Source: Paragordius varius
Taxonomy: Eukaryota > Animalia > Nematomorpha
Length of the DNA stretch: 64,000 nucleotides
Direction: 5' to 3'
NCBI GenBank assembly: GCA_964247055.1
Contig: OZ176057.1
Coordinates: forward strand, 4,588,001 to 4,652,000
The notes below the pieces were generated by a model. That model was not told the DNA's origin, made no database searches, and saw only the letters and a program-made list of their open reading frames with translations. Below, piece after piece: positions 4,001 to 60,206 of the stretch; position 1 is the first letter of the stretch; each line of letters opens with the position of its first letter. A program made the position numbers and the translations under genes.

Positions 4001-6794
4001 TTTTTTATGCAGATTCAAAAAATAAAAATTTTGCTTTAAATTAAAATAATACTGAAAATAAATTTATACCATAAACATATATTTCATATTAATAATGGGT
4101 TATATTAGTTCAAAAACGCAATAGTTATTTTTAAGGTGAATTTAAATTGTTCAAGGGTGAATTTAAATTGTTCAAAGGTGAATTTCAATTGTTCAAGGGT
4201 GAATTCGAATTGTTCAAGGGGGGTGAATTTGAATTGTTCGAAGATAAATTTAAATTGTTCAAGGGTGAATTTAAATTGTTCAAGGGTGAATTCGAACTGT
4301 TCAAGGGGGAATATGAATTGTTCAAGGGTGAATTTGAATTGTTCAAGGGTGAATATGAATTGTTCAAGGAGGGTGAATTTGAATTGTTCAAGGGTAAAAT
4401 TGAACTGTAAATGGTATATCCATCCATCCATTTTAGGTCCCAGGGTATCTGGGGTTTCCATGCACCAACTTTCTGAACAATGTACTATCAAAGACTTGTT
4501 CGTGTTCAATATTGAAGTGTGATAGATCTTGGGTCAGCTGTTTGGACCATGTGAGTTTAGGGCGGCCTTTTCTGTTTGGGCCGGGAATATTTAAATGTTG
4601 TATTTTTTGTACCCAGTTATCGGAATTCATACGTTGAATATGTCCGTAATATCGCAATCGATTGCGCTGAATGAATAGAGCTATGGGTTCATCTTCTTCT
4701 ATGGTATTATCAAAATTATTGTTGCAGATTTTGAGCATGTGATTTTCAGCTCTAGTAAGTCTATTTAGGTCTGTTGCTGTAAGGGCCCAGGTTTCTGTAG
4801 CGTATGTCATAGCTGGTCTTATTCCCATTTTGTAAATCTTTATCTTGTGATTCGATTTGATATATTTATTAGTTAAAATATATTTTAATTGATTGAATTT
4901 GGCCCATCCTTGTCTGATTCAATGAGAAATGGCATCCCTCAAAGAACCATCAGATGCTATATAATCGCCCAGATATGGAAAAGATGTTACAACTTCTAGT
5001 TTATCTCCATTAAAGTTTAAAGTACGTGGATTCGATATTGGCAGTGGTATTGATAAAGCACATGGTGTGCAGATAAAATTATTATTATTAATTAACTTTC
5101 CTTTTATGTTGGAACATTTTTTATGGACCCAATTTCTGCATTTTGTACAACAAAGTGAGTTTAGTTTTACCTCAGTGGTGCACACTGGGCATGGGAACTT
5201 TATAGTTTACGTTCATCTCCTGTGATTAGAATTTTAGTTTTGTTTGTATTGAAAAAAAATAAATGGTATATATATTATAAACGAAATATTACATTCAGCC
5301 GCATTAGGTCCACTGATAGATCCGGTTCGCTTATTAAGTATGTAGGATTGTCCTTCATCGCGGGCAGCAAAACGCTTGAAATGAATGTAATCACTATTAT
5401 CGGTTTGGGCCAAGGCTAACCAATACTGATAATCTTGGTGAGTTTCCATCAATTTCTAAAGTGGTTTTTTTATTCAAAATATGGAAAAACGTAAAATATT
5501 TTAACAGTTAAAACTAAATTAAATTTATTATAATAAAATTATTAAAACAGTAAAGTCCACACAAATATAATTTTTTGGATATCCTATGTTTTTGCAATCA
5601 AAAAATAAATGATCAAAAAGCTACAGTTACCATTTAAAAATGTTACTTAACACAACTTATGGGAAATGCTCAAAAATTTGCGGCGTTAACTACTCTTTTA
5701 TGCCTATGGTGTATTAAGCGTATAAATTTTGATAAATTTTCTTTGTTTTAAATTCACACAAATGATTTCAATAAATTTATATTTTTTTCAATTATTTTAT
5801 TTTCAAGTTTAGTCTTAATATTTACATTTTATTATTGTCAATTATAATTGACAATAATGTGTTGCAAAAAAATAAAAATTGTAAAAATGGATATTAGAAG
5901 ATCATGTGTGTGCTCCCTTTTGTAAGGTTGTAAAATTGTGATTTTTGATGTTTAATTTAAGTTTTTTTGAAAAAATTAAAATAGAAAATGCCAAAACATA
6001 AAAGATGATGAATTACCATTATTATCAAAGTTTAGTTTAATATTATTGGAGATTTTAAATATTACAGTTCAAATTCACTCTTGATTTTAAATATTACAGT
6101 TCAAATTCACTCTTGAACATTTCAAACCTAAAAAAAATTATGTGTTTTCGAACTAATAAAACTCCTTATTAATATAAAATAAATCTTGATGGATTAGTTT
6201 ATTGATTTTTCAGTATTATTTTAAACAAAATTTCATTTTTTTAAAAAATATAGGTTTTAAAACTTAAAAACACCTAATATATTTTAGAGTGAATTCGAGT
6301 TGTAAATGGTGTATATATATATATATATATATATATAAAGAGTAAAAATGAAATTATACCGACAAAAAACGTAAAATATTTAAAGACAAAATGTTTTTGG
6401 AAAGATAACCATACTTTTTAAAACTTTATTAATTCTATAAAAATCATTCAAAAATATATATACAATCATAAAATATATAATTGATTGTTAAACACACACA
6501 TCTCTATTTTATATTTTGCAGTTTAAAAACAATGAATGATTTATATTTGAAAATAGTCAAGTTGTTAAAAAAGTATAGGGTTGGTTGTCTTTTGAAAGAT
6601 AAATATATGGTTGTCTTTATATTTTTACGTTTTGTCCCCCCCGTATATAATTTCATTTTTTACTGTAAATATATATATTACTTCGACAAAAAGGCGTAAA
6701 TCTAAGCGAAAATTAAAGTCTCCAAATGCATACAAAAGCACTTTTTCCGCATTTTGATGATGTGATAAATTCTGTTTGATTCTAGAATTAAAAA

Positions 6795-19955: not shown

Positions 19956-22283
19956 ATGATTAATAATAACAATAGTCATTATTGTGTGTTAAAGGAAGGC
20001 ACAATTGACCATTATATTTCGGTTGAAAACGCTCTTAAAATTTTTAAGGACTCTAAATACCGTTATGGACAGTTTTCGTATCCTAATAATATCATGCTTG
20101 ACAAAGACACCAATAGTATAGCCAACAATACTGTAATAACAGGAAACAATACGCATTCAACTCTTACATTAATCTTGTATGAATTTGCCTTCATATTTCG
20201 ACGTCAAAGGTCACGCAATATTCATTGTGTAGCGATTCCCATCTTAACGTTTTTGGGTATATGTGTAAATGTTTTAGCCCTCTTATTTCTGTGTTGGACA
20301 TACCATCACATACACCGTCGCCAAAAACCAAAAGGGAGTCTAGGCATACGACCCGATATAATTCCTGAGCAAAGGCACACGGAAACTGCAAATGGAAGCC
20401 CTCAAGTTGATTCAGGACACATTTTTTCAAAGTTGTGTTTTCGGCTCAGAAATGTTTTGTTTGAAACGCAAAAATGGTATGACATGCTTAAACAAACATT
20501 GGATCATAAATGGCAAGAATTAGAGAATATCATTGAAACATACTTGAATCGTTTCCCGCGTTTCCTAAAGGTACGATCTTGGCTAAATTCCAAATTGATT
20601 AGGTTTAGCCAATTCATGTATTCCCAAAGGGATCAAAAAACACCCAATTATCATTTGACCATTATTATGATGTTGTGTTTTGCCAACATACTACTTCAAA
20701 CAATTGTTCTTAGTCGTAATACCATTGAATGCATGGCTAACCATCCATTTTACTATGGGTTTACAGAGGAGAGAAAGCCCTCATCGATTACAAATACGTC
20801 TAATTTGACCAGTCAAGAAAAAATAAAAAAGTTTGCTAAAATCCAATTAGAAATTAAAGAAATTAGTAATGACTTTGATGTATTCACCACACCGGCAACA
20901 TTTGGTCATACATCTACTACGACAACAAATATGCAGACACCTGTATCAAATATATCACCCTATATAACAAAAAGCATCATAAAGGAAACTTTTCCTTTGA
21001 ACGATTCAAATTCAGATAAGGAGTTAAAAACGTCGGAAAGCGCAGAAATTGCTTGGAACCTAATTTTGGTTCCTCGAGAGTCATTTAGGATCAAAGCTTT
21101 TAGACTCTATCTCTCACGGTCTTGGAATGTCTACATGGGCTCTTTCATTTTCCCACTATTTTTTGGTCTGATCTCCTTTATCTATTGGCTCACGTTTGCT
21201 TATACATTGAACCGTTATCTTTCGGCCTGTTATCCCAACGAATATCATTATTGGTGTAATAAAGAGGGGACCTTGGCCCTTATAAGCATAAGTGTAGGTA
21301 TATCTGCCATTCTTTATTTCCCAGTAACGTATAATTTTCGTTTAGTTGAGGTAGTTGTTAATTTAAGTTCTCAGCTGTTAGCATGTATGCTAGATGTCAT
21401 ATTTGTTAGACAGCCGTATACATTGTCAGACAAGAGAACAACATTAACATTTTACTCCATTACCAAACGGATCATAAGACACAAACAACGTTTATTGGGT
21501 TATGAAATAGCTCGGGAGTGTCTTAGTAAAGGGATACCCTTTCTCATTACGCTACATATGTTACGGGCCTTATGGCTAAGATATCGAAAAAGTCGCACAA
21601 ACCTCACTCACCCATTATGTCTGGATGATTATGTCAATTTTAGTGCCAAACACTCTCCAGAAACTAAATATTCACCAAAAGCTTTTCATTCCTCCGAAAA
21701 ACCTAACATGCTAAGTGTATCGCAGTTTTCACTGTTAAAAAATCGGTTCTTTTTGTCTGAAGACAAAAAAAATGCAAGTACGTCTCAAGGAAAAAACCAA
21801 AACCCCTCTCCCATATTACCCAAAATTATCAATACAAATGTGGATGATGGCGTAGTTGAAAAAGTATTCATTCCGAATTCCCTGGGCCAACCCGTGAAAC
21901 AATCTACACGCTTTTCAGCCATACCAACATTGTATACTAAAAATTCGTTATTTTCAAAACAAAGCCATATCTCTGAGAACAAATTAGAACACAATAAAAA
22001 CCCAGAAATAAAGTCATCTCCTAGCTTAAGTAATATAAGTCAATGGTTAGTTTACCTGTATGCTACTGATTTCCTAACTACACTCATATTTTGTTTGTGT
22101 AATGTTGTATTTGCGTTTCCCATATCAATTCTACAGTTTACAACAAAATACTGGCATAATCGAATATTTTCGGAAAATGCAATGTATATCACTAGTATAA
22201 CTCAAATTCTTGCTGTGTTATATACTATTTTGCCATTTCTTTTGATTTGGATCGTTTCTCTCATTATAAATAAACTTTCATGA
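19956..22283 (+). CDS. Intronless 775-aa orphan class A (rhodopsin-like) GPCR, peptide-receptor-like, with long loops
   Basis: Seven hydrophobic segments. TM1 LGICVN, TM2 LCFANI, TM3 ending TLNRYLSACYP (DRY-equivalent), TM4 Pro (YFP), TM5 IPF, TM6 F..P, TM7 ILPF. N-terminal NxS/T sequons. Confidence 0.85.
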   Translation: MINNNNSHYCVLKEGTIDHYISVENALKIFKDSKYRYGQFSYPNNIMLDKDTNSIANNTVITGNNTHSTLTLILYEFAFIFRRQRSRNIHCVAIPILTFLGICVNVLALLFLCWTYHHIHRRQKPKGSLGIRPDIIPEQRHTETANGSPQVDSGHIFSKLCFRLRNVLFETQKWYDMLKQTLDHKWQELENIIETYLNRFPRFLKVRSWLNSKLIRFSQFMYSQRDQKTPNYHLTIIMMLCFANILLQTIVLSRNTIECMANHPFYYGFTEERKPSSITNTSNLTSQEKIKKFAKIQLEIKEISNDFDVFTTPATFGHTSTTTTNMQTPVSNISPYITKSIIKETFPLNDSNSDKELKTSESAEIAWNLILVPRESFRIKAFRLYLSRSWNVYMGSFIFPLFFGLISFIYWLTFAYTLNRYLSACYPNEYHYWCNKEGTLALISISVGISAILYFPVTYNFRLVEVVVNLSSQLLACMLDVIFVRQPYTLSDKRTTLTFYSITKRIIRHKQRLLGYEIARECLSKGIPFLITLHMLRALWLRYRKSRTNLTHPLCLDDYVNFSAKHSPETKYSPKAFHSSEKPNMLSVSQFSLLKNRFFLSEDKKNASTSQGKNQNPSPILPKIINTNVDDGVVEKVFIPNSLGQPVKQSTRFSAIPTLYTKNSLFSKQSHISENKLEHNKNPEIKSSPSLSNISQWLVYLYATDFLTTLIFCLCNVVFAFPISILQFTTKYWHNRIFSENAMYITSITQILAVLYTILPFLLIWIVSLIINKLS

Positions 22284-49796: not shown

Positions 49797-52700
49797 ATTA
49801 CTGTAATAATATTCATGCCATATAGCTACTATATTATTCCTCAATTGGGAATCGTTTAATCACATCTTTAGATTTTTGATAAAAGATTTCTTTCGACTAC
49901 TTGACCAAAATTGACAGAATTTTTTTAAAAGATTTTAATGATGATCTGGAGAAAAATATTTATTATATTTTGTTATAAATGACTTTTCCAATTATTTCAT
50001 CCCAAAAGGTTGAATAATATAAAATTATTTGTTGTTCGTAATTTGACATTTTAAGTATTTTTACAAAAGATTTTATTTGAATAATATTATAAAGTATTGG
50101 CATTTCATTCGGTTTAGATTTTTAAATTTTTACAGTCTTTATTTTGTTTTAAACGTTTCACCATAAGAAAATAAACGAATCTTAAGACATTTTTTGAAAA
50201 GTTACAACATTTTTAAAAGAGACTAATAAACCTTGGGAAGTTGATGATTGGGCATCCATTTCTGTGTAATAAATTTAAATTTTTTAAATTAAGGCTGTAA
50301 TCCCGAGATTCGGTTAATAACTAATAATCCTAATAGGAGCGAACCTTATGTTAAAATCAGCTACGGTTTCTTTTTTTAAAGGCTTTTTTTAAATTAAATA
50401 TTATAATGATAATATAATTACTGTTGAAAAATAATTTCACAGAAAAAAACAGAAGCTTTTAAAGGTTTTAATCAGAATATAATTAGAAAATTAACATTTT
50501 ATTACCTATTTGGATAGTTTTATATCCTAGAGCGTTTTATAGTTTACATATCAAAAAGCATTTATGGTATGAGATCAAATAATTTGGATTCTGGTTTCTT
50601 TAAATATTAAGTGCATGCTTGGATTTTTTAAAAAAAAATATTGTAAAAATATCCTCTTCTCAAACTTTTGCCACCATTTTTTTCTACAAAAAATCAAGGC
50701 TAATAAATGTTAAATAGGTTAAAAAATTCAAATAATTGACTTGAGAAAGCTTTCAGAGTATTTTTATCATAAAACACTTGACATTGATTGATTATAAAAT
50801 CAGATGGTTATTTAAATCATTCTAAGAAACTGCCGCAATCAGAATCAAGAAGGAAATAGTATAGGCTTTATATATAATACAGGACATCAATGTTTTAGAA
50901 CTAAAACAAACATTTTTCAAAACCCTATTTTACCAGATAAAATTATGCGATATAAAACTACTCCAAAATGTCATGGTGTAAAAAAGTAAAAATTTGAATT
51001 TATGGCATAAGAGCCAAATTTTTTTAGTTATTTAAATCTTGGAATTAGGACTATTATTAACTGGCTCTGGTTCAAAAAGAAATTAGGCTTCCTCTTTAAA
51101 AATTAAAGAGTCACTTCTTCTGGCCGAATTATTCAATAAGTTTCTAAAATATACGCGTGGTAAAAATTGAGATTTTTCTACCCTTTAATTACTGATCGAT
51201 ATTAAAATATACTTTCTGAATAGCCATACAGTAATAAAATTTTTTATATTAAATCTTTGTTAAAGTTTAATTACTTAATTGCTAGTTTTTTATTTAAAGC
51301 TATGGGCCAAACGCAGATAGCCACTGTTCCATACATTTGTATGAACTCCCTTTGCCCTCTATTTATTGGAGGTACAATATTTATTATAAATAATTTTCAG
51401 TTTATTCTTATAAAAATCCCCCAAGAAAAATTCTCAATAAGACATAATCTATATTTGTATTAATATTATATATAATGTATTGAATTTACCTAGTTTTGGA
51501 CGCTTTGGCTCTATTTAATTATATAAAAAATATGATTGATTTCAAAAATGCTCTATTTATAAATTATATATATCATCTTATAGCTGAAGGCTTTAAAAAT
51601 AAATGCGTTTGACAATCTTAAAAAAAATTATTTAATTTTTATTGCATTTAGCCCACATGAAAAAATCGCATTCTTGTCGCACATTAGATCGGACAAAATA
51701 AAGTACAAGGGAGAAAAACGCCTAAACAAAATTTTATTTGATAATATTAGCCATAAGAATATTTTTAAACGCAAGAAATCAAAAAACATTTAAAAAACTT
51801 TGGCGTCTAATTATATTCTATAAATTTGTTATTTTGAAATAAATTTATATTTGTTTAATAGAGAAATTACCCAATATATCGCGTTTAAAAATATAAAAAA
51901 GAATTGCAATTCGCACCAAAATGGGATTACAGTATAGCCAAAATATATCATGTATTTTACTTATATAATTCGATTTAAGCAAAAACATCTATTGACTAAT
52001 TATTCATGAATTTTTTATGAGAATTTGGGTGCAAACTATAAAAAATTTCTAAACTCGATATATTTATATAGGGAATAAACACTATATATATGATTGTTGA
52101 AATAAAATTAGATGTTTACCGCAAAATAACAAGTTTAACGAATGAATTTGACGCCATGCGTTTTTTAGCATTTTCCGTTAGGGAAAAAATTTTAATAACT
52201 TTGTTTCCAGATTGTCAACCGCATTTATTTTTGATATTTATTATCCTGAAGGTTTTAGCAAATTGAGCATTTCAGCCGCGCACCTTATAGTTATTATTCC
52301 AAAAGTTTCATAAATGTAATGTTTAACCCAGTGCTTCCATATCAGATTGAGACCTTTTAACGGCTTTAGCAGAGTCCTGATTTTGACCGTTTGCAGCCTT
52401 TATAACCGAATTTTGATTCTTGTCAATATTTTTCCCCTTTATACTCGTCTTTTTGGCTTTACGAGGGACTGGGACCTCTGTATTGGGTTTAGTAGGATTT
52501 GGAGATTCGGTAAGATCTTGAGTATTTATGTTTGAGTCAGACTGGGATGATATTGTCGGGCCTTCACTTGGTTCCGCATGTGTAGACGAAGATGATTTAC
52601 GTTTCATCGCGAGGGGTGAAAAGGCGGCGGGTGCAGCTAAGCTTTTGGCTCCGCGGGCAACTAGCTTGGGGTTATCGGTTAAAATTTGTTTTCCCGTATC

Positions 52701-54594
52701 AACCAGTGAACTGCTTTGACTTGGTTCCATCACTTGTGTTTCTGCGCTATTTACCGTAAAAATTGAAATTATACAGACACAACTAGTACAAATATAAAGA
52801 AAAATATTTTTTTCCAAAAGAAACTATACTTTTATTAACAACCTTCTAATACATACATTTCTATTTCATAATTTGATATTAAAAACAATAAGTTATAATT
52901 ATATGGATTTAGTTTGGAAAAAGTAAAATTTTACTGTATATCTTGTCCAACAAATGTGTCTGATGTTGCTTGACTCAAACTCGTGCTTTGTTCAGGTAAG
53001 GATGATTCAAGGCCTTGTTGTTCCTCAATCGCCTGTAAAGCATTGGAAGATGATGGGGACTGTTCTGTTCCAGCATTAGTAACAACAGTTTCAGTTTCAA
53101 CTTCAAGGCCCTGAGCCATTTGACTTGAAGCCTGACCCGCGGCAACTTCTGTAGCCACCACGGTTTCTGCGGTCTCAAGAGCGCCCGCTGCAACTGAAGT
53201 AGCCACTGCGCTTGTACTGGCCACCGCGCCTGTGGTCGGGATAACCGCACCGACAGCAACAGCTGTTCCGGCTACAACTATGGGAGACGGTAAAAGATAG
53301 CGCGTAAAAATTGAAATTATATACGGACAAAACGTATGTAAAATGATAAAGATGATAAAATTTTTAACCTAAAAGGCAACCATACTTTTTGAATCTTCCT
53401 ATATTTATATACAACTGAATATTTTAAACTGCAAAGTATAAAATAGAGATATCGATTGGTAACACAATCCATTATGCATTTTATGATTGTATTTAAATCA
53501 TTTTATTTAATGTTTAAGAAATTATGGTTGGCTAATGAAAAAATTTTGTCTTTATATTTTACGTTTTGTCCGTATAATTTCAATTTTTGCATTTATATAT
53601 ATTATTTGTATATGAACGATAGTATATGTTTAAAATTTATTTGAAGGTGACTATTTTTATGTTCCGTCTTTAAAATAATAAAACAACTGCTTTAGCATTT
53701 TTAACCCTAAAATTTAATTTAATTTTAACTTCGAAACTATCCTATATGAAACTAATTACTGTCAAATTGCCCCAGATATATATTCCATTGTAAATAAGTT
53801 AAATTAAAAAATTTCATATTGAGAATAGTTTAAATTTACCTCCACCAGTGATACCTGGATTAACAATAAATAATAAAAATAAATTTTTAAAATAGAGCAA
53901 AATATTTTTTTAAAAAACACAAATTATATACCAACTGCAATTTTTCCAGGGGTCCATTTCGTTTCTGTCATTTGTTTTTCTATTGGTGTACCACTTTGAT
54001 GATTATAATACGAATGTGCTGAGGTTGGTGCTTTTAATAAATGGATATGTGACATGTTTTTTTTTCATATATTAAAAATGGTTAATAAAATAGGTTATAT
54101 CATACTAGCTTTGGGTTTACTCTTCTGTGGTTTTGTTGCATTCAAACCTAAAAATTAGATGATTTATATGGAGTCAAAACTTAAAAAATAAAAGACAAAT
54201 AAATGATAAAAAAGATAATTATTTTAAAAGAGTAGTATCCCTCGCAGCCCACGGCCACATTCTGCCCTCCAAAATTCAGCAGCCCACGAGAAATTTAAAT
54301 ACATAATTTTACTAAATCTAAATAAAATTCTTTTTCTTAACAAATTTTCTGAATAAGTCTTTTCAAATGAATGTCGGCATAGATAGTAATTTTAACAATT
54401 TTTTGTTTGAAATAAAATATTTCTTGATTCCTATATATTTTGTGATTTTAAATATAAGTCATTGTTTTAGGTCGCATAAAGGGGAATAGAGATGTAAATA
54501 TAATTTAATAGAGTAATTATATGGCATATGTGGGTAAAATCAAGGTTGAAAATATGATTGTCGCTTGGAAAAAAATATTTGTCTTAAAAATTTA

Positions 54595-54676
<82 letters not shown>

Positions 54677-57634
54677 ATTTATATATATATATTTAATGTA
54701 CTAAATAATTAATTTATTTGGTTATTTGTTTTTGTACTTGGATTGTTAGCAGGTGGCGTATTTTTCGACTCATGATTTCTTGATGTATTGGAATTTGAGA
54801 AATGCCCTAAATATAAAGGATTTAAAGCAAATATTTATTATTAGGAGATAATATAATTTGTTATTCGATGATAAATTTCAAATAAAAAAATGTCATTTTA
54901 AAAATGTGTAATTTTTTTGTTATATTTTTATTTAAAATAAACTTGATTTTGTACAGCCCTACTTACATGGAATAATCATTTATTTAAAGTTATTGGTATT
55001 TATATCATTTCACAACAAGTTAATCTTTAGTTTGATAATTTAAAACAACTAACCTTTTTTTATCACAATGATGAAAATGGGATATGCTTAATAACATTTA
55101 TCTTGAACGATTTCAAAATAGTTTATGCATTTTAATGGTCGCATATTTGACACTATAATTGGGCAATTTGCAACACACAGTAGTGTATGGAAAAAACATA
55201 AAAATGTTGAATTTACAATATCCTTTCCTTTTTCCATACCCTACTTGTGTTGCAAATTGCCTTACTATACCAATAAAAGGCATGTATATGCATATTTTTT
55301 GCAGGAATCGCCACATTAAAAAATTTCATTTTTATTTCTTATACATAGCTAACCTATAATTATAGGATTTACATGCTTTATAAGTTCTATATAAATAATT
55401 TATTCTTACGATTTTTCTCAATAAGCTTCGGATGCTTTATTGTAGAATCTATAATAGATGAAAATTTGACATTCCTTACTTGGACTTTTATTTGATGAAT
55501 CATGTCGTTTTCGCTCTAAATAAATTTTATTTAAAATTATTTGGTGTCTTTTCTATTAATAATTTACAATTACTTTGATGTTTACACAAAGTTTTGATAT
55601 TATAAATTAAATTAATGTCTGTATTTTTTTGACACCATTTTATTAATGCTCTTTTGAAATCAGGTCCAACCATTACCGAGACCGTTTTAAAAATAAAACA
55701 TTAAAATTTTTTTAACAAATCATTACCTCTAAAAAAACAGTAAATAAAATGCTAAAAATTAAATAGTATGAAAAATTATGGGAAATTAAACTTTTTTATA
55801 TAATTGACATAAGAGTTAAATGTTTTACAGTAAAAAGAATTAAAATTATTTAAATACACATTATAATATTTTGTATAATTCCTACATATTACATCCAATT
55901 AATTATTATTAATGAAAAGATGCGTTGTAAATCTAATCATTAATTATAATCTAAAATATATATGATATAATTTATTATTTGAAACACAACTTATAATATG
56001 TCGATAAAAAAAATTAACAAGATTAAATTATTAAGTAATTAACCTGATATAGAAAAGGGCTTTATAGCTTCTACGAGCTTTTTGTTTTGTGGTGGTTCTG
56101 TAAAAATAGCATTTGGTAAATTATAAATCTAATAATATGCATTATATTCATTCCTTTAAATCAAAGATCAAACAAATATTTTTTAATTCTGAATCTACCC
56201 TTCATATATATTTTTAGATTTCTACTACTCAATTGATTTTTTTGGTAAACCATATTTCAACTACTTAATTGTCATAATTTACGAATTCTGATGCAATATA
56301 CAGTAAAAAATTGAAATTATACCGACAAAAGGTATATAAAGACTATATTATTTCTAAAATAAAACCATACTGATCTAGATTTTTTTTCAATACAAATTAT
56401 TTTTCAAAATAACAAGGATGAAATAGAATTGAATATTGGTAACAATCAATTTTATGTTTTATAATCAGAATTAAATAATTATATGAGATAAACTAAGGTT
56501 TAAAAAAGTAGGGTTTTATTTTAGAAAAAATTTTTGTCCTTATATTTTTACGTTATGTCCTTATAATTTTAAATTGTACTGTATTTTGAACCGTCGAGTT
56601 TTGTAAAACTTAGTAAATATTAAAATCTAGATGATTTTCTCCTTTATACTACTATTTTTTTGTTTAAACACTTCTTAAATTAGGAATATTTTTATTGAAT
56701 CTAAAAACGCAACATTTTAGGTATATACACTGTGATATAATTCCTTTACCATAGAAAGTATTTTAATTGTTAAACATTTTTAAATTACGAACAAAGAAAT
56801 ATTTTTTTTAATTGTTTAATACATGGTGGCTACACCTTCATTTCAGTTCTTCGATATCGGGGTAATTAGATACCCCATTATTTAATATTAAATATTTTAA
56901 AAAATATGCAATAAATTAAAACCAAAGCAAATGTTTGCACTATAATAACATTAATGAACCGAAACAAAAAAAATCATTTTAAAATACGCTACTTATTCAG
57001 GGGTAAAACCCATAACATAAGTACAAAAATAATACGAAATTCACTTTTTTATTTCAATGTTAAATGTGAATATAAATAAAATCCTAATTTAGAGGCTTAG
57101 AATCTAATAAACAGATATTTTGCAAAAATGTTGTAAAATAAAAAAGGCCAAGTAATTTTATATGTAATTTTTTTAAAACTAAATTTTATATTTCGGCTTG
57201 TTATATATTAGGATAGACGCATAAATTTATATTGAAACTGTTTCTTGCAATATTTTTTCAGAAATAATTTAAATATTGTCGGGGGTATTTGGATACCCCA
57301 ATTTCAAAAGTGTTTAAAGAAAATACACTATAGGCAATGCTTTAAGGTACACAATAAATATACGATAATAAAAAATTTATTTTATAAATTATAGAAAACT
57401 AAAACTGCAAAAAATACGAATATTCTGAATAAATTTCGAAATAAAAAATTATATTAAACGTGGCGGTAAAAACAAGCAATGGACCAACTTAAAGAAGTGG
57501 TCAAAACAATTGAATTATTTATAGTGAATAGTCTTGTTAACATACCTTAGGAATTAAAAATTAAGTATTAGATGGTATAATTTATCTTTCTAAATAACTT
57601 AAAAACTTTTGATTTATTTGTAACGTCGTATCAG
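36620..57634 (-). CDS. Novel multi-exon micro-exon gene (core span): Gly/Ala/Val hydrophobic segment, S/T/Q/E-rich low-complexity region with PSTS repeats, possible folded C-terminal domain; start and stop not fixed
   Basis: More than 30 short GC-enriched islands bounded by T-rich AG and GT on the minus strand. Nearly all are phase 1-1 and 3n in length, and they join without stops to two large open exons. Manual prediction. Confidence 0.75.
36985..37017 (-). CDS. Micro-exon 33 nt (ESNLDSFSTND)
   Basis: attaaag/gtatta, phase 1-1. Confidence 0.52.
37508..37549 (-). CDS. Micro-exon 42 nt (xSDTVIQRMLEIRN)
   Basis: ataatag/gtacga, phase 1-1. Confidence 0.6.
37749..38015. mobile_element. Hairpin MITE with about 100-bp inverted arms, TTAA/TCAA flanks
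   Basis: Arms 37749-37845 and 37919-38015 match at roughly 90% by eye; loop about 70 bp. Confidence 0.75.
38343..38363 (-). CDS. Micro-exon 21 nt (xPNGWRI)
   Basis: tttccatctcag/gttaat; frame link to 38813 unresolved. Confidence 0.5.
38813..38833 (-). CDS. Micro-exon 21 nt (ISEQFIH)
   Basis: taatttag/gtaaga. Confidence 0.62.
38904..38924 (-). CDS. Micro-exon 21 nt (GSDHVSR)
   Basis: cctaaag/gtaata. Confidence 0.6.
39123..39137 (-). CDS. Micro-exon 15 nt (LRIVV)
   Basis: aatcatag/gtaaga. Confidence 0.7.
39582..39608 (-). CDS. Micro-exon 27 nt (TLMQMDRQS)
   Basis: tttttgttag/gtaagt. Confidence 0.72.
39675..39698 (-). CDS. Micro-exon 24 nt (xPKWNTAF)
   Basis: tttttccaag/gtaggt. Confidence 0.62.
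40600..40920 (+). mobile_element. Decayed RTE LINE 3' fragment
   Basis: IRKKLSFFGHIRR, frameshifted LEKSLMLG, RNEWRSY. Confidence 0.78.
41528..41548 (-). CDS. Micro-exon 21 nt (ARLTPEE)
   Basis: aatatag/gtaaat. Confidence 0.7.
41665..41700 (-). CDS. PSTS-family micro-exon 36 nt (NQAQSNEQPGTS)
   Basis: gcatttag/gtatct. Confidence 0.8.
42044..42082 (-). CDS. PSTS-family micro-exon 39 nt (DNQEPSTSRSEGQ)
   Basis: tacatag/gtaata. Confidence 0.8.
42606..42638 (-). CDS. Micro-exon 33 nt (VIYPVNGKAWQ)
   Basis: ttttaacaaag/gtacta. Confidence 0.48.
43149..43172 (-). CDS. Micro-exon 24 nt (VVRLLHVQ)
   Basis: caaacag/gtataa. Confidence 0.55.
44196..44216 (-). CDS. PSTS-family micro-exon 21 nt (DQPSTSR)
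   Basis: ttgtatag/gtatat. Confidence 0.8.
44500..45616 (+). mobile_element. Complete non-autonomous Helitron with about 2.1 internal tandem units (493 and 475 bp periods)
   Basis: A|TCTATATATTTATAAAG 5' end; GCTGC-GTA-GCAGC hairpin at 45588-45600; CTAG|T 3' end; no TSD; GTGATCTG landmark at 44535, 45028, 45503. Confidence 0.9.
45838..45867 (-). CDS. PSTS-family micro-exon 30 nt (AAEPRPSTSQ)
   Basis: atatag/gtacta; a NAGNAG acceptor also allows 27 nt. Confidence 0.85.
46411..46431 (-). CDS. Micro-exon 21 nt (EMVDIFQ)
   Basis: cctttttag/gtattt. Confidence 0.6.
46513..46518 (-). CDS. 6-nt micro-exon candidate TTCAAG (xQ)
   Basis: long poly-T + ag / gtatat. Confidence 0.5.
46887..46913 (-). 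CDS. Micro-exon 27 nt (AVGKKFSPE)
   Basis: attttag/gtaagt consensus donor. Confidence 0.72.
47104..47121 (-). CDS. Micro-exon 18 nt (DITPPT)
   Basis: atatag/gtatgt. Confidence 0.8.
47431..47460 (-). CDS. PSTS-family micro-exon 30 nt (VLEPKPSTSH)
   Basis: cgtacag/gtaatt. Confidence 0.85.
47579..47599 (-). CDS. Micro-exon 21 nt (DSVSATQ)
   Basis: tttatag/gttaat. Confidence 0.7.
48218..48235 (-). CDS. Micro-exon 18 nt (DITRPA)
   Basis: tttatag/gtatat; paralog at 47104. Confidence 0.8.
48918..49203. mobile_element. Family B MITE (Tc1/mariner-like ends; TIR CAGTAAAAATTGAAATTATACGGACAAAACG), representative of roughly 30 copies
   Basis: Long imperfect TIRs, TA TSD, about 285 bp. Other copies approx. 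32-375, 1310-1570, 6338-6665, 7445-7742, 9538-9813, 9988-10290, 10935-11226, 11877-12058, 12535-12800, 25905-26193, 29205-29471, 30930-31163, 31437-31710, 36235-36516, 37033-37270, 38500-38785, 49348-49614, 53301-53591, 56301-56581, 59537-59785, 63670-63910. Confidence 0.9.
49637..49666 (-). CDS. PSTS-family micro-exon 30 nt (VMEPQPSTSR)
   Basis: aatttag/gtaggg. Confidence 0.85.
50232..50261 (-). CDS. PSTS-family micro-exon 30 nt (EMDAQSSTSQ)
   Basis: tacacag/gtttat; homologous to 49637, 47431, 45838. Confidence 0.8.
51335..51358 (-). CDS. Micro-exon candidate 24 nt (EGKGSSYK)
   Basis: aaatag/gtatgg; needs a further exon before 50261 to avoid a junction TAA. Confidence 0.42.
51490..51510 (-). 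CDS. Micro-exon 21 nt (EPKRPKL, NLS-like)
   Basis: aaatag/gtaaat, phase 1-1. Confidence 0.72.
   Translation of the reverse strand, partial: SQSVQN
52328..52746 (-). CDS. Large exon 419 nt (HAETQVMEPSQSSS...SQSDMEAL)
   Basis: GC-rich open frame, acceptor taaatag, donor gttaaa; phase 2-1. Confidence 0.83.
52747..52934 (-). other. Predicted 188-nt intron formed almost entirely by a MITE insertion
   Basis: Starts GTAAAA inside the TIR (CA|GTAAAA) and ends TAAATAG 7 nt past the MITE; splicing restores the frame. Confidence 0.72.
52754..52936. mobile_element. Family B MITE, internally deleted copy, inserted in coding sequence
   Basis: Ends CCGTAAAAATTGAAATTATAC / TTTTACTG, TA duplication on both sides, internal homology to other B copies. 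Confidence 0.85.
52935..53277 (-). CDS. Large exon 343 nt (VVAGTAVAVGAVIPTTG...SDTFVGQDI)
   Basis: GC-rich open frame, pyrimidine tract ctcccatag; donor GTAAAA lies inside a MITE terminal repeat; phase 1-2. Confidence 0.85.
53840..53854 (-). CDS. Micro-exon 15 nt (GITGG)
   Basis: aatccag/gtaaat; links KIAV to VVAGTAV, forming one hydrophobic segment. Confidence 0.75.
53932..54030 (-). CDS. Exon 99 nt (TPTSAHSYYNHQSGTPIEKQMTETKWTPGKIAV)
   Basis: ttaaaag/gtatat, phase 1-1; an in-frame ATG at 54055 is an alternative start. Confidence 0.7.
54106..54147 (-). CDS. Micro-exon 42 nt (SLNATKPQKSKPKA)
   Basis: tttttag/gtatga, phase 1-1. Confidence 0.7.
54598..54672. repeat. (TA)n microsatellite, longest in window
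   Basis: Uninterrupted TA run; others at approx. 49744-49794, 39878-39912, 11740-11774, 11388-11415, 6799-6830, 19729-19754. Confidence 0.95.
54738..54806 (-). CDS. Exon 69 nt (RHFSNSNTSRNHESKNTPPANNP)
   Basis: atatttag/gtacaa, phase 1-1. Confidence 0.7.
55480..55515 (-). CDS. Micro-exon 36 nt (ERKRHDSSNKSP)
   Basis: ttatttag/gtaagg, phase 1-1. Confidence 0.68.
56044..56097 (-). CDS. Exon 54 nt (xPPQNKKLVEAIKPFSIS)
   Basis: tttttacag/gttaat, phase 1-1. Confidence 0.62.
57599..57634 (-). CDS. Micro-exon 36 nt (xDTTLQINQKFL)
   Basis: tttttag/gttatt, phase 1-1. Confidence 0.4.
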
Positions 57635-60206
57635 CTAAAAATTATTTAACTTTAGCTTAAATATATATTTAACATTATGATTGTATTTAATCCGTCAACA
57701 CGCGACCTTTATGCTGCCCGCAAAATATAAAATTTTAACAAATTTAAGTAAAAATGATTTTCTTTTCCACTACAAATTTTTGTCGAATTTCGGCCATAGT
57801 GCAAAAAATTTTAAAATCCATAGGCCTTATTTTCACAAACTGATGTTTCATATCTTATGTTATACCCATATATTTTGAAAGGGCAGCTCGCCAAAATATT
57901 GATCTTCTAAGTGTATCTTGCAAAGTCATTAATGTTGGACACCCCTGATTTAAACATTAAACATGTATTCATAAAATGTTGCGATATCTTGAAAATCTTT
58001 GTTTTTATTAAAATAAAACTTGCCTTGGGTTTAGGAAAATTGATAATATTTATTGTAATATACCAAAAAAAATTCGGACATGTATATCGGTATCCGTTTT
58101 GTTCTCTAAAATGGTTAAAAAACATTCTATTAAATCAATTATAAACCAAATAAGATTGATAGACAAAAGTGCCACATAATTCGTTATATACCATTTACAG
58201 TTCGAAGTCACCCTTTAACAATTTAAATTTACCCCTCAATTCAAATTCACTCTAAAAATAAATTATGTGTTTTCGGTCTAATATAACTCCTCATTAATAT
58301 GAAATACATCTTAATGGAATAGTTTATTATTTTATTACTTTAATTTTAAACAAAATTTTATTTTTAAAAATATAAAAAAAAACATAAATAATTTTTAATC
58401 TTAAAAAACACCTAATTTATTTTAGGGTCAATTTAAATTTTCGAGGATTAATATATATTGTAAAGGTATATAATAATATAATCCAAATTCCATTTGATTG
58501 TTGTAACATATCCGATATGCGTATGCAGTATATACTATTTACTCAAATTCACCTTTTAACTATTCAATTAACCCTAAAAATAAATTATGTGTTTTTGAGC
58601 AAGTGTAACTCATCATTAATGTTTATTTCTCATAGTTTATCATTTTTTTCAGTATTATGCTAAATTTTTACGAAATTATTTGTAAAATATAAAAACTTAA
58701 ATATTTTATATCATTTACAGTTAAAGGAGGTGATGATTTAGAATGCAAATGATATAAAGCAAAAAAATTATTTTTAAATTTTAAATGATAATTTCCCATG
58801 TACTAATAAACGCAAAATTGCATGGATTTTATGGACTTAATTCTACAGTTTAAAGAGATTTCTATTTGGCCTCATGTTTGAAAAAAAATCTCTAATATGC
58901 AAAATATATTTTTTTATAATGAGTATATCTACATAACGTTTAGCCATATTATATCGCGTTCATAAAAAAATAAAATAGAAATAATTTTTAAAAAATTTGC
59001 ACCAAAGCGAAATAGTATAAATTTTTACACAACACCTTTAATAATATTTATCTAAAGCAATTCAATGGATAAATAACTTGTGACTTGATATATTAATTCT
59101 ATTATCTAAAATTAAGTTTATAAACCGAAATAGCCCCTTAAATATTTAATTTTGATTTTCAGGCATAACAACTCCGTGAATCAAAACTCTGAAATATTTT
59201 TTTTGGTAACAAAAAAATGTAATAAATATGAGAGGTTTTTATTAAAAATATTTTCTATTACTCATGGCATCTAACTTATTTATTAATCCCCTTATATTAT
59301 TATATATAAGTCTGCCATTGGGTAAATATTTTATAGGGTACATATAGACATTATGACAATGTATATATTAAATTTTTATAAAATAAAAAATAACAAGCTT
59401 TTGTAATTTCTACTTATTTTAATTGTATAATCTCTACATTAGTCTAACCTATTATTCATATGATACTATTGTACAAATTTAATTGCTGCTTTTCTGTTTG
59501 ATGGAATAACTTCTTTTCCTAGTATTTAATGCATTTACAGTAAAAAATATATGTACAAAACGTAAAAATATAAGGACAAAATATTTTTCTAAAAGACAAC
59601 CCACTTTTTTAAACCTTAGTTTTTCAACAAGAACTTATTTTCTTTTAAATTATATGATTGCTAATCCATATTTTGCAACCTAAATAAGTAAAAATTGCAT
59701 AAATAAATCAGAAAATATATGGTTGCCTTTTAGAAATATATGTCTTTATATTTTTACGTTTTGTCCGTATAATTTCAATTTTGATTGTATCATAAATTTT
59801 ATGATACACCATTGAATGTCCGCACAATGTGTCCAATTTCTTAAGCCGATAATACTTAAGCAAATTTTTGAGATATTTAATAATTAACCAATTCAAAGTA
59901 TATTCATAAATATGTAATACTTGTGTAGATTATATCATTTTCAATTTCAGTTAGATTGGTTTCTAGAATAATAATTATATAATATGTTAAATTCCCAAGT
60001 TATACAACTCAATATTCATGTAAAAATGTCATGTGTTATTTGTTGAACCGTTCTCAATAGTAATCATTTATTAGTTCCAAAAATTATTATTTACTCTTTT
60101 TTACAAGATCAAGTCATTATCACGATACAAGTTAATGAATAAAAATCATTTCAACAAGGTAAGCTACTGTCAATGTTATTTTTGTTTATCGTCTACAGGG
60201 GAAATT

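Follow-up and report, generated by a model that had tools for sequence, protein, structure and literature searches.

An old Tc1/mariner-type MITE within a constrained coding sequence of a nematomorph: a candidate for intron gain

In the 64,000-nucleotide stretch of Paragordius varius DNA analysed here (the window), a shortened copy of a Tc1/mariner-type, TA-targeting MITE family, MITE1 (52754..52936, minus strand; 183 bp, 19.7% GC), lies inserted within the coding sequence of a small minus-strand gene. MITE1 is a recognizable member of its family, is present in several haplotypes, and is flanked on both sides by sequence under coding-type constraint. The most likely explanation, to which we give somewhat better than an even chance on the strength of the sequence, is that MITE1 is spliced out of the transcript as an intron, with the choice of acceptor a matter of prediction as well. 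The origin of new spliceosomal introns in animals is a long-standing question, and MITE1 offers a clean candidate case, open to testing, of an ordinary MITE giving rise to an intron in a gene that is constrained on both sides of the element. Transposon-derived introns are already known as a kind; MITE1 would be a new example in an unusual host.

Overall, the GC content of the window is 24.6%, and its GC profile contains a few GC-richer islands. In the ORF translation, the island at 52323-53277 (minus strand) holds two stop-free stretches in the same frame: an upstream stretch of 113 codons (53275-52937, minus strand) and a downstream stretch of 142 codons (52751-52326, minus strand), the latter closed by the stop TAA at 52325-52323 (minus strand). 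The initial annotation had given 113 and 139 open codons for the two sides; the first figure stands, counted from a putative acceptor at 53278, whereas the second is corrected to 142. On the minus strand, the site reads ...GGA CAA GAT ATA / CAG TAA AAT TTT AC ... CAATTTTTACGG / TA AAT AGC GCA GAA, with slashes at the two ends of MITE1; the upstream frame ends in ...TFVGQDIQ and a stop, and the downstream frame starts with VNSAETQ.... Deletion of MITE1 together with one TA gives GGA CAA GAT ATA AAT AGC GCA GAA (GQDINSAE) and a single frame of 113 + 142 codons, and the uninterrupted, MITE-free form of the site is ...GATATAAATAGC.... If MITE1 stays in the mRNA, translation ends at the in-frame TAA at 52931-52933 (CAG TAA, minus strand). 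The element's coordinates, the restored GQDINSAE and this premature stop had all been proposed beforehand, and each agrees with the sequence. That exact excision makes the frame continuous and that the surrounding 48 nt resemble exons in their GC content (~40%) together argue that MITE1 hit coding sequence rather than an older intron. Provisionally, the upstream coding piece is termed exon 2 (52935..53277, minus strand; 113 full codons, its last two bases, CA, coming from MITE1 if the donor in the terminal repeat is used) and the downstream piece exon 3 (52323..52746, minus strand; to the stop TAA, and starting at 52782 if an acceptor inside MITE1 is used).

As its terminal repeats, copy number, and TA duplication demonstrate, MITE1 is a Tc1/mariner (Stowaway-like) MITE. 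In the sequence, TA target-site duplications border it on the exon 2 side (52937..52938) and on the exon 3 side (52752..52753), and TA flanks the family as a whole, being found at 10/21 left ends and 11/18 right ends against a background of 12.5%; MITE1 has TA at both ends. The end motif ATAATTTCAATTTTTACGG has 17 matches in the window versus 0.6 expected, and blastn finds ~30 family loci in these 64 kb, in line with the number first reported; MITE1 is the only one located in coding sequence. Full-length copies of the family measure 265-324 bp and carry terminal repeats of ~30 nt starting CAGTAAAAATTGAAATTAT. Family copies share 80-90% identity with the window consensus; in the alignment, MITE1 reaches 74% overall and is without ~100 nt, among it most of the donor-side (exon 2-facing) terminal repeat, so that its earlier description as diverged and internally deleted is borne out. 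Its acceptor-side end, CCGTAAAAATTGAAATTAT, is intact, whereas its donor-side end is reduced to CAGTAAAATTTTAC. Both MITE1 and its family are old. Dating MITE1 from the consensus assumes that its source copy resembled that consensus, whereas the comparison of haplotypes is free of this assumption.

For that comparison, the region 51801-57800 was examined in four genomic DNA runs, which comprise two samples under the species label and one run labelled otherwise; SNPs here are differences between contigs rather than read-level calls, and the best-supported 40 of 142 are listed. Both borders between MITE1 and the exons are bridged by contigs of the second individual (X9 records 27, 28), and the interior of MITE1 is covered by both haplotypes of run X1 (52846: 312/572). 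All readable sampled haplotypes carry MITE1, and none of the 15 joints listed (307 more fall beyond the listing) is an empty-site joint. Inside MITE1, divergence between haplotypes is ~5%, at or above that of the exons; since the MITE1 haplotypes differ as much as or more than the exons do, the insertion predates the split of the haplotypes. Across 51801-57800, haplotypes differ by ~4-8% in non-coding DNA, and the two individuals carry at least three of them. A published nematomorph genome paper gives 0.55% heterozygosity, 26.9% GC, and 64% repeats, mainly DNA transposons; the haplotype differences at 51801-57800 far exceed this heterozygosity, and the terms ‘intron’ and ‘MITE’ are absent from the main text of that paper. 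The run labelled otherwise (X3, labelled organism B) yields contigs at 2-6x, and of its eight listed pieces, seven match the window exactly; the run may stem from a host or from mixed material, may have been mislabelled, or may represent the source sample under a second name.

The same data show that both flanks are under purifying selection, as seen on this partial SNP list in a frame-specific excess of synonymous changes together with in-frame indels. Among the best 40 of 142 SNPs, 21 are exonic, and these divide into 13 synonymous, 8 non-synonymous, and 0 stop changes, where 6.4 synonymous would be expected of the 21 if the same base changes fell at random exonic positions (P=0.003). The excess is present in each piece separately, with 7 synonymous and 5 non-synonymous listed SNPs upstream and 6 and 3 downstream (P = 0.027 and 0.028, respectively), and it depends on the frame: reading the same 21 listed SNPs in the two shifted frames gives synonymous/non-synonymous counts of 4/17 and 6/15. 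Codon position 3 holds 13/21 of the listed exonic SNPs (P=0.007). In addition, SNP density, counted from contig pieces, is ~2-3.5% in the exons versus ~5-8% in MITE1, the intron, and nearby non-coding DNA. Net length changes are +6 and +3 in exonic contigs and -1 and +5 (+AA and +CGG) in contigs that mostly span MITE1. Within exon 2, a diverged 48-nt direct repeat (53136-53213; 30-nt cores 77% identical) codes for A/T/V-rich segments in repeated form, and the in-frame length polymorphism is likely to be located there.

Composition likewise has the character of coding sequence. The upstream piece has GC fractions of 0.65/0.56/0.33 at codon positions 1/2/3 and the downstream piece 0.50/0.48/0.35, and this GC3 of 0.33-0.35 equals the 0.33 of a 775-aa ORF of the window. 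The exons have 44-51% GC, versus ~20% in MITE1. A single frame of the six is stop-free in both pieces; the others contain 2-12 stops, except that one more is open in the upstream piece only. Neutral decay by substitution alone was simulated for 255 codons with the spectrum of this region: all codons stayed stop-free in 3.9%, 1.7%, and 0.2% of runs at 8%, 10%, and 15% divergence, respectively. Family copies stand 10-20% from the consensus. Open frames on both sides are thus unlikely under neutral decay, at 0.2-4% of simulations.

The gene is a single-copy, lineage-specific orphan. Neither coding piece matches a Pfam family, and homologs were found neither among 5.8 billion clusters (word-indexed search) nor among 1.84 billion representatives (exhaustive phmmer); in the protein atlas, both pieces are without a match and meet low recognition by the protein language model. 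Within the window, tblastn and blastn find no paralogs of the exons, and words from the exons have a 0.00 share in the listed RNA runs of the species. Because these searches gave no relatives, the gene has to be judged by its DNA. In run X1, the exons are covered by contigs to the same depth (~412-434) as unique flanks, which marks the locus as single-copy and outside repeats.

To survey the ways in which MITE1 might be removed, a full list was made of the GT/GC..AG pairs near the site whose use would leave the frame intact and free of stops. The candidate 5′ splice site is the GT at 52933..52934 (minus strand; G at 52934) in ACA/GTAAAA, which occupies positions 3-4 of the terminal repeat and is the sole GT with a GTAA core at or before the in-frame stop; as a donor it is weak, agreeing with the metazoan consensus at GTAA only. 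One candidate 3′ splice site is the exonic AG at 52747..52748 (minus strand), TTTTTACGGTAAATAG/C, which would give a 188-nt intron and the junction DIHAETQ; this AG (TAAATAG/C) lies 5 nt past the TA duplication, and splicing to it would swap N-S for H. The initial annotation had named this pair, CA/GTAAAA and TAAATAG/C, together with its in-frame DIHAE junction, and all of these are present. To the acceptor it named must be added a second in-frame AG inside MITE1 (52783..52784, minus strand; after TTTTTCTTTATATTTGTACTAG), which would give a 152-nt intron with the junction DIHCVCIISIFTVNSAE; compared with the exonic site, it has the better pyrimidine tract, and its use would add 12 MITE-encoded residues. 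Exon 3 contains three more in-frame AGs farther from the site (52721, 52715, 52712), each of which would cost more coding sequence. A hairpin of the terminal inverted repeats (TIRs) that pairs the splice sites was considered and is unsupported, as the RNA fold of the MITE1 intron is no better than its shuffles (z=0.29); the shortening of the donor-side repeat explains why MITE1 forms no notable hairpin.

The candidate donor adjoins a polymorphism. In a common +3 allele at 52933/52934, the GT is immediately preceded by three added bases (+CGG on the plus strand), such that the minus strand reads CAG CCG TAA...; the extra bases fall on the exon side, leave GTAAAA intact, and keep the frame of either candidate spliced form. 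This allele and a +AA allele at 52917, inside MITE1, both occur in both sequenced individuals. The end of the +3 allele reads CCGTAAAA, which is the start of the reverse complement of MITE1's other end.

The history we propose is as follows. A Tc1/mariner-type MITE copy, with its TA duplication and its repeat starting as in the rest of the family, entered a coding exon of the minus-strand gene long ago and introduced the in-frame TAA, and the gene survived. Being AT-rich, with 20% GC against 44-51% in the exons on either side, the insertion is most likely recognized as an intron, with splicing predicted to run from the GT at terminal repeat positions 3-4 (52934/52933) to one of the two in-frame AGs: the exonic one at 52748/52747, with N-S replaced by H, or the inner one at 52784/52783, with 12 residues gained. 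Since the flanks kept evolving as coding sequence with MITE1 in place, its removal from the mRNA is the simplest account.

Upstream of exon 2, the gene structure is more tentative. The putative acceptor AG of exon 2 is at 53278..53279 (minus strand; ctatcttttaccgtctcccatAG/TT), as judged from the sequence, and a second, full-length copy of the MITE1 family, MITE2 (53302..53592, minus strand; 291 bp), occupies part of the presumed upstream intron and stops 23 nt short of this good acceptor-like sequence, ctatcttttaccgtctcccatag/TT (...cccatag/TT) at 53278. Given MITE2 and MITE1, both introns of this small gene would be largely MITE sequence. Exon 2 starts with an A/V/G/T-rich, membrane-helix-like stretch, and there is no in-frame start codon between the preceding stop and its coding part, so at least one further exon is needed. 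A weak candidate for exon 1 is found at 53932..54055 (minus strand), with an ATG at 54055 and a donor G/GTATAT at 53932/53931; its phase-1 end fits exon 2, giving ...GKIAV-V-VAGTAV..., and it would complete a hydrophobic helix, ...GKIAVVVAGTAVAVGAVIPTTGAVA.... The four SNPs listed for it among the best 40 of 142 differences are all non-synonymous (4/4) and clustered, which keeps this exon model tentative; a micro-inversion as the source of the cluster was checked by hand and rejected. The gene product is probably a small protein that is anchored in a membrane and has a disordered tail.

One may argue that MITE1 split or shortened the gene instead, with the mRNA keeping the element and translation stopping at the TAA at 52931-52933 to give a shorter protein, while the downstream piece serves as 3′ UTR or is translated separately, with the ATG of ...TQVMEPSQ... 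as its start, as in a transcript that begins within the MITE. This is the main rival, and we consider it unlikely. It draws on the in-frame TAA at the very edge of MITE1, an in-frame ATG 8 codons into the downstream piece, the weakness of the donor, and the 0.00 share of exon words in the listed RNA runs. Against it, the 142 downstream codons are stop-free, with 6 synonymous and 3 non-synonymous listed SNPs (P about 0.03) and a coding GC periodicity; this constraint and periodicity mean that the downstream piece is not a plain UTR, and separate expression would need both a new promoter and a new start, which is less simple than splicing an AT-rich insert out from between GC-rich exons. One may also argue that the insertion inactivated the gene and that the two open frames are relics yet to decay. 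The want of homologs and of a protein family, the low recognition by the protein language model, and the absence of exon words from the listed RNA runs would all suit a dead gene; nevertheless, MITE1 is old and common to diverged haplotypes, the synonymous excess is specific to one frame, the exons vary in net length by multiples of three, and both frames would have stayed open by neutral chance in only 0.2-4% of simulations, so this reading is distinctly improbable.

Two further alternatives concern what MITE1 landed in. In-frame GT..AG pairs do enclose the site (donors 52974, 52980; acceptor 52743), and MITE1 might have hit an older small in-frame intron, such as TGA/GTCAAG...GCGCAG/AAAC, which is 48 nt long without the MITE, in which case no intron was gained. 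We find this very unlikely: the 48 nt have an exon-like ~40% GC, as opposed to ~20-25% in non-coding DNA here, and are stop-free in the frame of the gene, the donor GTCAAG is poor, with C at +3, and both SNPs listed in the 48 nt (among the best 40 of 142 differences) are synonymous. Finally, the orphan status, the low-complexity A/S/T/V-rich composition, and the internal 48-nt repeat would be compatible with there being no gene at all, only a GC-richer low-complexity island whose frames are open by composition and which received a MITE by chance. To this we give the least credence, as just one frame runs through both pieces free of stops, against 2-12 stops in the others (one more being open upstream only), GC3 matches the coding GC3 of the genome, no other frame shows the concentration of listed SNPs at codon position 3, and the SNP density of the exons (2-3.5%) lies below the ~5-8% of the adjacent MITE and intron. 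Removal of MITE1 by splicing is thus the reading we prefer.

Single exonic insertions of DNA transposons that are neutralized by splicing have a classical counterpart in maize, where Ds and dSpm insertions were reportedly spliced from exons (wx, adh1, and bz alleles) in the work of Purugganan and Wessler in 1992 and of Wessler and colleagues. Those alleles are recent mutants with leaky function, whose splice sites lie partly in the element and are partly cryptic exonic sites. MITE1, as a candidate, would resemble them in its small in-frame changes, whereas its insertion is an old one, to all appearances fixed among the haplotypes sampled, and the gene around it is still constrained. Compared with Stowaway-like/Tc1-mariner MITEs in general, which share its TA duplication, repeats starting CAGT, 180-320 bp length, lack of coding capacity, and many copies, MITE1 differs in no mechanistic respect and is unusual only in its location in a coding exon.

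DNA-transposon introners, known from algae, dinoflagellates, and others, supply one splice site and co-opt the other (PMC11282704). Introners, such as those of Micromonas pusilla, Aureococcus, and the dinoflagellate families, are short, non-autonomous elements with TIRs and a target-site duplication, as is MITE1; if its candidate sites are used, MITE1 would also be like them in having one splice site in its terminus (the candidate GT), the other taken from the flanking exon, and few residues changed. Unlike them, the family of MITE1 is an ordinary MITE family found mostly in non-coding DNA, with one of its ~30 loci in 64 kb in coding sequence; the frame at MITE1 would be kept by a chance AG and not by the target-site duplication, and splicing here is a prediction. 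A TA-G target, the nearest possible acceptor, would add 1 nt and cause a frameshift. An in-frame outcome is therefore not built into the element, depending as it does on a chance exonic AG, and MITE1 has the look of a copy that selection let persist, not of a specialized introner. Thus, as to the original proposal that a MITE had become a new intron in an introner-like event, the exonic insertion and the continued selection on its flanks are upheld, whereas the label ‘introner’ overreaches for an ordinary, mostly intergenic MITE family whose in-frame outcome hangs on a chance exonic AG.

In animals, introners were found in two groups only in the survey of 3,325 genomes by Gozashti et al. (PMC9860276 / 10.1101/2022.06.06.494994). 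A further animal case is the tunicate Fritillaria borealis, whose MITE-derived introns are, according to the account of Henriet et al. 2019 given in PMC11282704, mostly non-canonical (AG-AC, AG-AT). As summarized there, this system is like MITE1 in that MITEs with TIRs and target-site duplications lie in the coding sequence of an animal genome and are proposed to be removed as introns. The Fritillaria borealis introns, by the same account, need a modified spliceosome, whereas MITE1 offers a canonical GT..AG pair and invokes no spliceosome change.

Taken alone, the MITE1 locus is one unproven case, and the gene concerned is an orphan. It is possible, though we hold this only tentatively, that the locus is one case of a wider process in which Tc1/mariner-type MITEs create canonical GT-AG introns across the genome of a very AT-rich ecdysozoan. 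With its symmetry, the terminal repeat CAGTAAAA would supply a donor whichever way the element is inserted, and the marked difference in GC between exon and element might let the spliceosome treat fresh insertions as introns. If true, this would be a third metazoan lineage with introner-like activity, and a non-marine one; if further cases hold, they would provide a series of intron gains that differ in age and can be dated, and with it a natural test of the rescue of exonic insertions by GC contrast.

Elsewhere in the window, the 775-aa ORF mentioned above (19956-22283, plus strand) is a single-exon ORF of 35% GC with multiple hydrophobic segments, whose protein-atlas neighbours are rhodopsin-type GPCR clusters (score 0.92-0.93) and which has no significant Pfam match. 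The region 4105-4828 has no Pfam match at E<=0.1; within it, a reverse-transcriptase-like ORF fragment (4433-4828, minus strand) adjoins a tandem array that reads EQFKFTL.../NLNCSRV... on two strands. Upstream of the tentative exon 1, the stretch 54587-54731 is extremely AT-rich (8-14% GC), and reads are apparently cut there by the repeat filter.
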